Positions 18,843-32,209 of a DNA stretch of 64,000 bases are shown in pieces; position 1 is the stretch's first letter; every line of letters begins with the position of its first letter. The notes under the pieces are model-generated. The model was not told where the DNA came from and made no database searches. It saw only the letters and a list, made by a program, of their open reading frames with translations. A program made the translations under genes and the position numbers. Location of the stretch: positions 124,001 through 188,000 of the IMG/VR virus record IMGVR_UViG_3300042516_005475; one strand, given 5' to 3'.

Positions 18843-19222
18843 GGGCCTGTACTGGTTTCGATTTAACAAACTAATATAGTGTTGCACGTAGATGTTGATC
18901 GGTTGGCATCTTAAAAAGCTGATCAAAAGTTAAACGCTGAATATAGCTATGACTACGAGGCTAAGGCTGACTCTTTTGAGTACGACTTCGCTTCTGAATC
19001 CGCTGTAGCCTAAGGGCTGCACCAGACCTACTCTAAACTTGTAAGGTAGAGTCTGCTATACAAGTATCTAGTTACTATGGTAGTAAGTAGCTGGATTATT
19101 GCTACCGAAAATCTGAGTTAGGTTGTTGCTTAGTAACCTCAGATTATACAAAGCAAATAAGCGTGTAGAAGCATTATAGTATTGGGTTAAAGACGCAGGT
19201 TCAACTCCTGCCAGGTCCACCA
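18843..19222 (+). ncRNA. ssrA: tmRNA
   Basis: 5' GGGCCTG pairs with 3' CAGGTCC-A-CCA including G3:U70; GGTTTCGA D-like loop; T arm GCAGG-TTCAACT-CCTGC; tag ORF 18936..19013 AEYSYDYEAKADSFEYDFASESAVA*. Confidence 0.93.
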
Positions 19223-19227
19223 ATTTC

Positions 19228-19315
19228 GGAAGGGTGGCAGAGTGGTTTAATGCAGCGGTCTTGAAAACCGCAGTGGGTAAAACCACCGGGGGTTCGAATC
19301 CCTCTCCTTCCTCCA
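19228..19315 (+). tRNA. tRNA-Ser(TGA)
   Basis: Cloverleaf with long variable arm, loop CTTGAAA, encoded CCA. Confidence 0.92.
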
Positions 19316-19316
19316 T

Positions 19317-19408
19317 GGAAAAGACGTGAATGTCGGTTTTTCACAGCAGTTTGCTAAACTGCCGAGGTGTAACAGCCTCCGTGAGTTCAACTCTCACCTT
19401 TTCCGCCA
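19317..19408 (+). tRNA. tRNA-Ser(GCT)
   Basis: GGAAAAG/CTTTTCC acceptor, loop TTGCTAA, long variable arm, CCA. Confidence 0.9.
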
Positions 19409-19415
19409 TTTCAAT

Positions 19416-19489
19416 TGGGGTATTGCATAATGGTAGTGCAGAGGTCTTTGAAGCCTCTTGCGGGAGTTCGATTCTCTCTACCCCAACCA
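19416..19489 (+). tRNA. tRNA-Gln(TTG)
   Basis: TGGGGTA/TACCCCA acceptor, loop CTTTGAA, CCA. Confidence 0.92.
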
Positions 19490-19495
19490 ATTTAT

Positions 19496-19570
19496 GGGCT
19501 GTTAGTGATAGTGGTAGCACGGGAGCTTTGCAAGCTTTAGGGAAGAGTTCGATTCTCTTACGGTCCACCA
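19496..19570 (+). tRNA. tRNA-Ala(TGC)
   Basis: G3:U70, loop TTTGCAA, CCA. Confidence 0.9.
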
Positions 19571-19583
19571 TAAATATTGTGAT

Positions 19584-19657
19584 GCGGGTATAGCTTAATG
19601 GTAAAGTGCCAGTCTTCCAAACTGGCTATGCGGGTTCGATTCCCGCTACCCGCTCCA
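19584..19657 (+). tRNA. tRNA-Gly(TCC)
   Basis: GCGGGTA/TACCCGC acceptor, loop CTTCCAA, U73, CCA. Confidence 0.93.
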
Positions 19658-28547: not shown

Positions 28548-28844
28548 ATGAGCTTTGATAGTTTAGTAACAATTTTAGAGCAAGAACATGGCCCAATAAG
28601 AATTCTTTGCTATGATAAAATGCACAAGAGAATTGTTATAGATAAGAAGTGTCACTTCAGCCCATTTAAAGTAGAACAAATGGTTAACTATATCAAAGAC
28701 GATCCAGATTTCCAAATGAAGATTGGTGAAGTTATTGACTATCCATTTGGACATCAACATGTACAAACAAAAGGGTCAACTAAGATGATGACCATAGATG
28801 ACCCTAACAGCTTGTTTAAGATTAAAGCTATTCTTAAGCAGTAA
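28548..28844 (+). CDS. Hypothetical protein, CTS-like N-terminus
   Basis: Start moved to ATG 28548 (MSFDSLVTILE); ATAAATA at 28536. Confidence 0.55.
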   Translation: MSFDSLVTILEQEHGPIRILCYDKMHKRIVIDKKCHFSPFKVEQMVNYIKDDPDFQMKIGEVIDYPFGHQHVQTKGSTKMMTIDDPNSLFKIKAILKQ

Positions 28845-29724
28845 GCATTAGCTCAATTGCATCATCTTTGCCTTTGAGCTCAATGTCCCAAATTACAGGC
28901 TTGCCAAAATCCTTAGGCTTAGAGGCAGCAAAATCAGCATGATTTCTAGTCATGCCAATGCCTTCACTATAATGAAACACTGGAGTTACATTCCATGTTT
29001 TGTAAGCCAACTCAAAAGCTTCGTTATCGCTTTCCCCGTTGTTACAAAAATTATGATGCAAGGTATCGTAAGTGACAGGGATACCAGCAACATTATAGAA
29101 ATAACTACAAAGATTTTTGATATTCCAAGTACCATTTTTGTTATCGTTAACTTCTACTACCAAACGCTTCTTTACATTGCTAGGTAAGTTGTTATAGTTA
29201 TTAATGAACCTAGTAGAAATCTCTACAGGGTCCCCTTCTTGTCTGCAATGAATATTAAGACAGTTATAATAGTCTTGCTTTAGATTAAATCGATCAAAAA
29301 TATCTGCATGGCTAATTAGATCCCTAAAGCTATTTTTAATGACTTCAGGATTCTCGCTAGTGAGACTAATGAACTCAGATGGGTGAGCCGTAATACGAAT
29401 ACCAGAGCTCTTTATTAGCTCACTTGTACTTTTGATTACACTATTCATAGTATCAAAGTCAGGCAAGTCTTCTAGCCGTAGATCAACATCTGGATGATTA
29501 ATAACAGGGGTAATATCAGAAGACAATCTATATCCTTCTAGATTCATACTAACACAATGCTCAATTGTCTTATGAGTAACAACAAAGTTGTTTAGAATGC
29601 GTTGAGACAATGTCTTAATAGCTTCTTTCTTATCTAGAGATTTGAACCTAGTATAAGTCATCTTCTGAAACTTAACACCTTTGCGGCTAAGTTTATTAGA
29701 GATGCAGCATAGAGAGTAATTCAT
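28834..29724 (-). CDS. uvsE: UV damage endonuclease (UvsE/UVDE)
   Basis: YRLSSDITP, RITAHPSEF, NIHC, LVVEVND, TYDTLHH, FHYSE, HAD, DIELKGKD. Confidence 0.92.
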   Translation of the reverse strand: MNYSLCCISNKLSRKGVKFQKMTYTRFKSLDKKEAIKTLSQRILNNFVVTHKTIEHCVSMNLEGYRLSSDITPVINHPDVDLRLEDLPDFDTMNSVIKSTSELIKSSGIRITAHPSEFISLTSENPEVIKNSFRDLISHADIFDRFNLKQDYYNCLNIHCRQEGDPVEISTRFINNYNNLPSNVKKRLVVEVNDNKNGTWNIKNLCSYFYNVAGIPVTYDTLHHNFCNNGESDNEAFELAYKTWNVTPVFHYSEGIGMTRNHADFAASKPKDFGKPVIWDIELKGKDDAIELMLTA

Positions 29725-30901: not shown

Positions 30902-30976
30902 GCTCCAATAGCTCAGCGGCAGAGCAAGCTGTTTATAACGGTTAGGCCGTAGGTTCGAATCCTACTTGGAGTACCA
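30902..30976 (+). tRNA. tRNA-Ile(TAT)
   Basis: Stem AGCTG/CGGTT, loop TT-TAT-AA, canonical T arm, A73, CCA. Confidence 0.85.
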
Positions 30977-31309: not shown

Positions 31310-31382
31310 TGCGGGATGGAGCAGTGGCAGCTCGTCTGGCTCATAACCACGAAGGTCGAGGGTTCGAGTCCCTCTCCCGCTA
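31310..31382 (+). tRNA. tRNA-fMet(CAT), initiator-like, lacking encoded CCA
   Basis: U1:U72 mismatch, GGAGCAG..GCTCGT initiator-like D arm, loop CTCATAA; irregular anticodon stem; followed by GAG instead of CCA. Confidence 0.82.
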
Positions 31383-32116
31383 GAGTGAGCGCAAACTACT
31401 TGCACGTAGTTCACTTGCACACCTTATTGGTGACCAAATGTTTGCAACCTAGAGTTTATTATATCAATAATAATATTGAGGTAAGTGTAACTTGATTGTT
31501 CTTTGAAATATTTTTGCTGTGTTGTATCTATAATACACAAATCAATTTTATTCGCTATACACTGATAAAATTTATTGTTATCATTTTTTTGTATTTGATT
31601 CAATATTTTGTCACCGTAAATTGATTCATAATGAAAAATACCATTCAATTCAAATGCTAATCCTAATTTAGGTAAATATATATCTAATTCAGAATATATA
31701 GCTTCTTTACTATTAAACAAAATAGTTAACTCAGGGTATTTTTCTTTTAACTTATTTTCAATCCATATCTCAAGCTTAGATCTTCTCGTGCCATGTTTTT
31801 TGTGAGTATTGTTATACCTAGCAGAGCAGTTTTTACTACAAAAAGTATTTTTTCTGGATTTGTATGGTAAAGAAATACCACACTGTTTACATTTTCGTGG
31901 TTGAGATTCATAAAATGTGTGTATTTCTGCTGTTTTTGTACTATGATACTTACCTCTACCGTTTGTGTGGTTAACAGTATTATTGTAAGAATACCAACAA
32001 CTACGTTTATGACTATTTAAAGCTAACAAATTTTTAAGTTCTTTTTTGCACTTCGAGCAGGAGACCATATAATATTATTTATGAAAAATGGATTTCAAAT
32101 CCCTCTCCCGCTACCA
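31369..32116 (-). mobile_element. Free-standing endonuclease cassette bounded by a 14-bp direct repeat of the tRNA-fMet 3' end
   Basis: TCCCTCTCCCGCTA at 31369..31382 and at 32100..32113; the second copy is preceded by TTCAAA and followed by CCA. Confidence 0.75.
31424..32068 (-). CDS. Zinc-finger plus Vsr-like PD-(D/E)XK homing endonuclease
   Basis: CSKC..HxxxC, CKQC..FCSKNC; SKLE...ELDIYLPKLGLAFELNGIFHY. Confidence 0.8.
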   Translation of the reverse strand: MVSCSKCKKELKNLLALNSHKRSCWYSYNNTVNHTNGRGKYHSTKTAEIHTFYESQPRKCKQCGISLPYKSRKNTFCSKNCSARYNNTHKKHGTRRSKLEIWIENKLKEKYPELTILFNSKEAIYSELDIYLPKLGLAFELNGIFHYESIYGDKILNQIQKNDNNKFYQCIANKIDLCIIDTTQQKYFKEQSSYTYLNIIIDIINSRLQTFGHQ

Positions 32117-32209
32117 ATGTGAGTTTGTCAGTGAGTACTCATTAAAAACTGAATGGTGGAGGTGGCTAGAAATAGCCTCTAGAGTTAAGATTCTCTTTAA
32201 AAAATCTAT

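Follow-up and report, generated by a model that had tools for sequence, protein, structure and literature searches.

[quoted passage not shown] The cassette, which we interpret as selfish DNA, belongs to a large undescribed family that occupies the ends of phage tRNA genes. The window analyzed is a stretch of 64,000 nucleotides, bases 124001-188000 of a 230-kb IMG/VR virus record (IMGVR_UViG_3300042516_005475) that is rated complete and derives from lake-water metagenomes. It carries a tmRNA gene and 21 tRNA genes in arrays and has no close relative among GenBank phages, as blastn returned only tRNA-level matches and tblastn with the ORF returned nothing.

Both ARAGORN and Rfam (52.9 bits) call the tRNA-Met(cat), which ends in ...TTCGAGTCCCTCTCCCGCTA and is followed by GAG, whereas the 20 other tRNAs in the window all end in an encoded CCA. 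The 14-mer TCCCTCTCCCGCTA occurs exactly twice in the 64 kb, and 0 of 100 shuffles gave two matches. The 20-nt stretches 31363-31382 and 32094-32113 are 90% identical. The second copy is preceded by a T-loop-like TTCAAAT but not by a T-stem 5' strand, making it an orphan 3' fragment, and a single ORF lies between the copies. The observation made in the initial annotation, a CCA-less tRNA separated from an orphan copy of its 3' end by an antisense endonuclease-like gene, is therefore confirmed. The label 'fMet' used there is not established, as the 1:72 position is an initiator-like T.T mismatch but the anticodon stem lacks the three G-C pairs. The features of the locus are compiled in the table.

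Table. Features of the tRNA-Met locus and its cassette, in window coordinates.
Position	Strand	Feature	Details
31310..31382	+	tRNA-Met(CAT), complete	73 nt, ending at discriminator A31382; no encoded CCA; identical over 73/73 nt to the tRNA of empty-site contigs L239 and L241
31369..31382	+	Left copy of the 14-bp exact direct repeat	tRNA T60 to A73; the imperfect 20-nt repeat starts at 31363 (T54)
31383..31445	+	HDV-like (theta-type) double-pseudoknot ribozyme, tRNA-sense strand	Predicted cut between A31382 and G31383; P1 31383-88/31411-16 (G1.U wobble); P2 31391-96/31440-45; P3 31398-400/31408-10; L3 31401-07; P1.1 31402-03/31417-18; P4 31420-23/31429-32; J4/2 31433-39, with candidate catalytic C31434
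31424..32068	-	ORF, 214 aa, putative homing endonuclease	N-terminal C2HC-type finger; FCS-type zinc finger (C60, C63, C77, C81); C-terminal Vsr/DUF559-like PD-(D/E)XK nuclease domain (residues 95-214; invariant E100, E127, D129, E140, H146); last 7 codons and stop codon overlap ribozyme P4/J4/2/P2 on the other strand
32069..32099	+	AT-rich right end of the cassette	Small hairpin (TGAAA 32082-86 / TTTCA 32093-97) that pairs with the T-loop-like TTCAAAT (32094-32100); other cassettes have equivalent hairpins built on their local T loop
32100..32116	+	Right copy of the direct repeat (32100-32113) followed by CCA (32114-32116)	Orphan 3' end, continuous with the native trailer that directly follows the tRNA in empty alleles
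31383..32113		Insertion, 731 bp	Absent from relatives L237, L239, L240 and L241; placed here by convention, register ambiguous within the 14-bp repeat

Comparison with cassette-free relatives reveals that the 731 bp are an insertion. A search of IMG/VR with a 35-nt junction pattern found nothing, but a metagenome scan for the predicted junction returned five hits, one of which (L238) is an unrelated tRNA-Met. The other four contigs (L237, L239, L240 and L241) share the tRNA order of the window (Ile-tat, Leu, Arg-tct, Glu, Met, Arg-acg, Phe, Asp and so on) and lack the ORF. Each carries one intact tRNA-Met ending in ...CGCTACCA, joined directly to the sequence that follows the orphan in the window. 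Relatives retaining both repeat copies without the ORF had been named in the initial annotation as an outcome that would refute its interpretation, and these relatives carry only one. The empty alleles come from relatives that are 73-90% identical to the window in coding flanks, whereas around the site identity is about 99% for 400 nt to the left and 96-98% for about 650 nt to the right, spacers included, against about 83% or less further out. This gradient resembles a recently exchanged block centered on the site, although tRNA conservation contributes to it and the signature is suggestive only. A second filled/empty pair, cassette-bearing L210 and empty L242, shows the same geometry at another tRNA-Met in another phage, with a 20/20-nt repeat. 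A search for an empty site of the cassette at a cta-anticodon tRNA (L235) found nothing.

The cassette is fixed in the population of the window. At least 19 contigs are about 100% identical to it, and contigs carrying the same neighboring metallophosphatase all carry the cassette. Logan contigs, the only form in which the sequencing runs were examined, show the filled form without a precise 731-bp deletion, and the RNA run barely covers the ORF, so these data are uninformative on excision and expression and ongoing mobility is not shown here. A sigma-70-like promoter using the complement of the orphan T loop as its -35 box was considered and set aside, because it would start transcription inside the ORF and such matches are no more frequent than in shuffles.

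The interpretation offered in the initial annotation is partly supported. A free-standing Vsr-like nuclease gene has invaded the 3' end of tRNA-Met with a duplication of that end, as proposed. The proposal further held that the cassette entered at the T loop and rebuilt the tRNA with a variant, possibly cleavage-immune T loop, leaving the orphan as the displaced original end, which predicts an empty allele reading TTCAAAT and ending in CCA. No such allele was found. All four empty alleles, from lineages 73-99% identical in the flanks, read ...TTCGAGTCCCTCTCCCGCTACCA and carry TTCGAGT, the T loop of the complete tRNA, and the variant TTCAAAT belongs to the orphan. The idea of a tRNA rebuilt with an immune T loop thus has no support; if any copy is altered, it is the orphan. 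In addition, the orphan T loop of the closest sister cassette, TTTAAAT, lacks the conserved C56 and is not a pristine resident T loop, and the two sister orphans share AAAT, suggesting that this part travels with the cassette or was changed afterwards. The geometry remains compatible with the proposal, diverged orphans at two other family loci (L230 and L177) could be displaced resident ends, and the TTCGAGT alleles could in principle be revertants formed by recombination between the repeats inside the exchanged block, but we consider this version doubtful. The initial annotation did not identify the ribozyme or the size and tRNA range of the family.

A tRNA 3'-end duplication flanking an insert is also the classic att geometry of integrase-type islands, in which a tyrosine or serine recombinase acting in trans would create attL and attR and the nuclease would be mere cargo. 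This reading is very unlikely, as the insert holds one nuclease-like ORF and no recombinase, the same single-ORF cassette recurs at many isotypes and in hundreds of phages, and the repeat sequence differs with each target, whereas an attP core is fixed. A chance repeat was likewise rejected.

The 214-aa protein combines zinc fingers with a Vsr-like PD-(D/E)XK fold supported at moderate strength. The AlphaFold model (pLDDT 82.9) places the C-terminal domain closest to the DUF559 protein 3hrl (Z 9.7), the I-Bth0305I catalytic domain (3r3p, Z 9.4), Vsr (1cw0, Z 8.9) and PvuRts1I/AbaSI (about 8.2), with all matches over residues 94-214 and scores only moderately above background. The family alignment shows the four invariant cysteines of the FCS-type finger and a conserved core, SKLE...SELDIY.P.L.LAFELNGxxHYE...ND..K...C...D. 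Membership in the EDxHD homing endonucleases is not supported, since the alignment shows S-E-L-D and F-E-L-N-G-x-x-H in place of the EDxHD motif of the one characterized Vsr-like homing enzyme and a PDB sequence search gave no hit to 3r3p, finding only the FCS zinc finger. NCBIfam gave no meaningful hit and PHROGs only weak 'HNH/homing endonuclease' profile hits.

A word search found 3,335 relatives of the protein, almost all unnamed, and IMG/VR holds 266 stretches, with up to three copies in one contig. In 41 of 65 distinct loci, an antisense tRNA gene abuts the stop codon, at -65 to +140 nt. These tRNAs span 16 isotype classes: Met (most often), Glu, Gly, Ser, Arg, His, Thr, Lys, Leu, Pro, Gln, Trp, Ile, Asn, Cys and the cta-anticodon tRNA. 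Some ORFs run into the antisense tRNA, giving C-termini such as GIRT or GLEP. Isotype labels are scattered on the protein tree (37 changes against 39 when shuffled), although the tree is poorly resolved.

Just upstream of the start codon, at a fixed distance, many loci carry a copy of the last 13-20 nt of the same tRNA. Orphans matching 11-13 of the last 13 nt are present in 11 distinct loci (p<=0.005 against shuffled queries). Identity is 20/20 in L210 (Met), L227 (His) and L235 (cta), near-perfect in L183, L232, L204, L166, L194 (Lys) and L215, and recognizable but allele-like divergent in L230, L177 (Pro) and L159 (Thr). It begins at T54 at the earliest and always ends at N73, after which the complete tRNA continues into the cassette and the orphan into a native-looking trailer. 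The closest relative of the window protein (72% aa identity), in an unrelated tRNA array with a different tRNA order (L136), has the same layout on its own tRNA-Met, and its repeat follows that tRNA, including compensatory T-stem differences.

The origin of the repeat is unresolved. Ordinary homing would copy positions 54-73 of the donor into the left copy, yet both copies match the resident allele in several different isotypes, and this model does not explain how the repeat forms at new targets. Three accounts fit the data: repeated loss-and-reinvasion cycles between near-identical alleles, a staggered cut 20 nt apart followed by fill-in, and template switching at the shared T loop. In the transposon-like form of the second account, which competes only over how the repeat arises, the nuclease would cut between positions 53 and 54 on one strand and between 73 and 74 on the other, the cassette would be joined or copied in, and fill-in would create a true 20-bp target-site duplication, later eroded to 14 bp here. 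The sharp and constant limits (T54 to N73) in tRNA-Met, His, Lys and the cta-anticodon tRNA favor it, as do the identity of the complete tRNA to the empty allele and the match of both copies to the resident allele even in closely related cassettes on different tRNAs, for example L232 (Met) and L235 (cta). However, no known Vsr-like or homing enzyme makes 20-nt staggered cuts or performs strand transfer, we saw no terminal inverted repeats, and some orphans (L230, L177 and L159) look like intact 3' halves of a different allele, which fits donor/recipient mixing better than a duplication that later decayed. We regard this account as possible but unlikely.

The first 63 nt or so of the insert are far more conserved than a spacer should be. 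Aligned over 19 cassettes, they fold as a nested double pseudoknot in the HDV order, P1-P2-P3-(L3)-P3'-P1'-P1.1-P4-J4/2-P2', with all five helices present. In this alignment, 92.3% of cells pair against 70.4% in shuffles (0/500), 20 of 22 pairs show changes on both sides, and controls with slid partners pair at 26-50%. P3 is CG:10/UA:9, and the two base pairs of P1.1 (columns 24-41, GC:14/CG:5, and 25-40, CG:19) are 100% paired. G.U pairs outnumber A.C 42 to 10, which places the RNA on the tRNA-sense strand. The core ACY-T-SC-ACGT-RGT and J4/2 CTAA match the published theta ribozymes, and an earlier assignment of P3 as CTAC/GTAG was replaced by the theta-type ACY/RGT on comparison with the published descriptor. 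A near-invariant C sits in ACTAA, corresponding to C31434 within ACCAAAT of the window; its catalytic role was not assayed. The first pair of P1 is a G.T wobble in the window (G31383.T31416) but AU:7, GU:6 and GC:3 across the family; the expected G1.U closure of the cleavage site is undecided, and actual cleavage was not tested. The window copy could be weaker, as its J4/2 reads CCAA rather than CTAA and its P1 has 6 bp. The stop codon of the nuclease gene sits in L4. Rfam did not flag the RNA, and the covariance model hits only beside these ORFs, once in the 230-kb genome and never in empty loci. About a third of the sampled family loci have this ribozyme and the rest abut the tRNA directly, so the ribozyme is not obligatory.

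Together, these observations support a mobile cassette of about 0.73 kb docked exactly behind the discriminator base, a model we hold with reasonable confidence. The analysis itself demonstrates the insertion polymorphism, the repeat of the resident tRNA tail, the covariation-supported ribozyme fold, the nuclease fold and the family-wide architecture, whereas self-cleavage, DNA cleavage and its position, homing and the origin of the repeat are inferences; neither the protein nor the RNA was assayed for activity, including cleavage of empty over filled alleles and self-scission in vitro. In this model, the endonuclease cuts cassette-free alleles in or near the segment from the T loop to the 3' end, and break repair copies the cassette in. 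The ribozyme, whose first nucleotide follows A73, should cleave itself off the tRNA-array transcript and leave a tRNA ending at position 73, which would explain the missing CCA. Host enzymes would then heal this end and add CCA; no phage CCA-adding enzyme was found. The insertion would thus stay nearly harmless, much as a self-splicing intron makes an intron-borne endonuclease gene harmless. The repeat of tRNA positions 54/61-73, joined to the native CCA and trailer, would mark the interval between the cut and the insertion point, serve as the right-hand homology arm for homing into any phage with the same tRNA, and allow precise loss. The two G-to-A changes in the orphan T loop may protect the orphan from the enzyme, transferring the immunity idea to the other copy, or may be inherited with the cassette, since the sister orphan shares AAAT.

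A non-selfish role, in which ribozyme and nuclease form a tRNA-maturation or anti-defence module that serves the phage, for example by controlling tRNA-Met supply or cutting host DNA or RNA, and is patchily distributed by ordinary recombination, appears unlikely. Theta ribozymes have been proposed to regulate tRNA maturation, the cassette is fixed in this population, and RAP/FASTK Vsr-like domains, among the fold hits, act on RNA. However, presence/absence at exactly the tRNA end with a duplicated target, multiple copies in one contig, scattered isotypes and the antisense orientation fit a mobile element better.

A bolder reading, about as likely as not, is that the cassette represents a previously unrecognized class of mobile element, in which a free-standing Vsr-like endonuclease gene is coupled to an HDV-like ribozyme acting as a 'half-intron'. 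It would invade the exact 3' end of many different phage tRNA genes and duplicate positions 54-73 of whichever target it enters, while the ribozyme trims the tRNA so that the host gene stays functional. At least part of the tRNA-associated theta/HDV-like ribozymes of phages would then exist as the harm-limiting module of selfish endonuclease cassettes and not primarily as regulators of recoding. If this holds, it gives a selfish-element explanation for HDV-like ribozymes at the ends of phage tRNA genes, a question left open when theta ribozymes were described in 2024. It would also add, beside self-splicing introns and inteins, a third way for an endonuclease gene to invade an essential RNA gene without killing it: a single self-cleavage plus a duplicated gene end. 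Finally, it would name a function and a target class for more than 3,300 unannotated proteins in large uncultured phages, helping annotation of tRNA arrays in which orphan fragments, odd-length tRNAs and CCA-less tRNAs would otherwise look like errors. Filled and empty alleles and a short ribozyme make every step accessible in vitro, and if the enzymes read the near-universal T-loop box and cut at a fixed distance, they may also be useful tRNA-gene-directed nucleases.

Each part of the cassette has precedents: theta/HDV-like ribozymes at phage tRNA ends, Vsr-like homing enzymes, endonuclease genes in tRNA arrays, ribozyme-assisted mobile elements (group I introns, R2) and tRNA-end duplications (att sites). 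We found no paper linking an HDV-like ribozyme to a phage homing-type endonuclease or to a tRNA-tail duplication, and there is a fair chance that the element deserves its own class. Among the closest known systems are the theta ribozymes, minimal HDV-like ribozymes at the 3' ends of phage tRNAs (Kienbeck et al. 2024, PMC10879173), which are reported to self-cleave in vitro with a cleavage site within +/-5 nt of the tRNA 3' end, on tRNAs of which only 4.5% encode CCA. The RNA described here shares their position, with G1 directly after N73 in most aligned cassettes, their fold order P1-P2-P3-P1.1-J4/2, and their conserved L3 and J4/2 letters. The core (ACC-T-CC-ACGT-GGT and CTAA) is identical to the commonest theta sequence except for CC versus GC in P1.1. 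It differs in bearing a 4-7-bp P4 hairpin with covariation (4 pairs, all with double changes) where theta has a 6-nt L4, making it a P4-bearing relative that the published descriptor would miss and not a member of the minimal motif as defined. It also comes from lake-water and not gut phages, overlaps the 3' end of an antisense nuclease gene, and is part of an insertion with a target repeat; the main text of that paper never mentions an endonuclease. The founding minimal ribozyme, drz-Mtgn-1, has neither a tRNA nor this ORF at its 37 IMG/VR loci and is absent from INPHARED.

I-Bth0305I of the EDxHD family (PMC3239194) is likewise phage-borne and multidomain with a Vsr-like catalytic fold, but it is intron-encoded in recA, and the protein described here has zinc-finger DNA-binding modules and ELD...ELNGxxH, as in DUF559. 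Group I introns with homing endonucleases in tRNA genes, such as I-Ssp6803I in cyanobacterial tRNA-fMet, follow the same logic of an endonuclease gene riding with a ribozyme that removes the effect of the insertion from the host RNA, and share the PD-(D/E)XK class and a tRNA-Met-type target. The parallel with I-Ssp6803I, drawn in the initial annotation, is only an analogy, since Rfam finds no intron at E<=10, a single 3'-end cleavage replaces two-step splicing, and the insertion lies behind position 73 with a target duplication and not in the anticodon loop. SegB of phage T4/T6 (PMC13096335) is a free-standing endonuclease gene inside a phage tRNA array that acts on the tRNA region of relatives. 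It belongs to a different nuclease family, GIY-YIG, and has no ribozyme, and no precise docking at N73 or tRNA 3'-end repeat is known for it. The R2 and L1Tc retrotransposons (PMC3414825, PMC3383444) illustrate a mobile element in a structural-RNA gene that uses a 5' HDV-like ribozyme to separate itself from the host co-transcript. These are eukaryotic retroelements with reverse transcriptase whose ribozyme frees the element's RNA, whereas here the element is DNA-based and the beneficiary is the upstream tRNA. In mitochondrial mobile ORFs that duplicate the 3' end of the invaded gene, such as Allomyces atp6, an endonuclease ORF also enters the end of a gene, preceded by a functional end and followed by a displaced copy, but the hosts are protein-coding genes with in-frame fusion and no ribozyme.

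The phage-encoded tmRNA gene of the window, with tag peptide AEYSYDYEAKADSFEYDFASESAVA, is followed directly by five tRNA genes, and several related cassette loci (L124, L127, and L128) also carry tmRNA genes next to their tRNA arrays. A UvdE-like endonuclease gene lies just upstream of the tRNA array in the window, which includes a tRNA-Ile with the unusual anticodon TAT. The tRNAs next to the cassettes are often duplicated within the array (Trp ×2, Val ×2, Glu ×2, Asp ×2, and Pro ×2), with one copy being oddly long (84-92 nt for Trp, Pro, Met, and Lys), as if it carries an insertion in the variable region. Three copies of the nuclease family (loci L170, L173, and L224) lie in a single 34-kb viral contig, IMGVR_UViG_3300050015_000530, consistent with spread within a genome.

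Coordinates of features observed in the window and in related loci
Sequence	Position	Strand	Feature
Window	18843-19657		tmRNA gene, followed directly by five tRNA genes
Window	28834-29724		UvdE-like endonuclease gene
Window	30902-30976		tRNA-Ile, anticodon TAT
Window	32082-32097		Right-end hairpin of the cassette
Window	32098-32069	minus	Sigma-70-like promoter match
Window	32150-32175		Trailer hairpin between the orphan and tRNA-Arg
L157/L158	281-364		Oddly long tRNA next to the cassette
L177	1972-2063		Oddly long tRNA next to the cassette
L166	2036-2120		Oddly long tRNA next to the cassette
L194	1985-2070		Oddly long tRNA next to the cassette
L210, L183, L230, L177	Right ends, about 25 nt upstream of the orphan	tRNA-sense	T4-late-promoter-like motif
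L184	About 60-130 nt past the ORF stop		tRNA-like 3' end followed by an HDV-like variant candidate

The right end of the cassette always contains a short segment complementary to the local orphan, the downstream copy of the tRNA 3' end, pairing with its T loop or T stem to form a hairpin that changes with the target. Examples are TTCGAAAA...TTTTCGAA and, in the window, TGAAA...TTTCA; such hairpins were seen at the right ends of the window's cassette and of the cassette loci L159, L177, L235, and L204, and their function is unknown. At the right ends of four cassette loci, a T4-late-promoter-like TATAAATA motif points outwards towards the orphan and the downstream genes. The cassette may restart transcription of the downstream tRNAs. 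The window and the related cassette locus L136 lack the motif in that orientation. The window contains a sigma-70-like promoter match (TTGAAA-18-TATTAT, 10/12), with its -35 box formed by the complement of the orphan's variant T loop. This match would start transcription inside the ORF, and such matches are not enriched over shuffles. Beyond the orphan, comparison of the window with the cassette-free contigs L237, L239, L240, and L241 reveals that the trailer hairpin differs between filled (GGCTAGAAATAGCC) and empty (GGCGAAAGCCC) alleles, with the stem kept and the loop changed.

At locus L184, a tRNA-like 3' end is followed by GATTAAC...CCACGAG...GCTAA, which looks like a further HDV-like variant that our covariance model did not score. 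Among the published theta ribozymes, the commonest occurs as two convergent tRNA-Leu-ribozyme units about 180 nt apart on single reads such as ERR2738447.1213775 (Supplementary Data 1 of PMC10879173), an inverted arrangement for which we have no explanation. Suppressor-type tRNAs with anticodon CTA, called 'Pyl' by ARAGORN, occur beside or near the cassettes at L235 (tRNA cta), L126/L165, and L132/L190. This hints that some host phages read TAG as a sense codon, as reported for phages that carry theta ribozymes.
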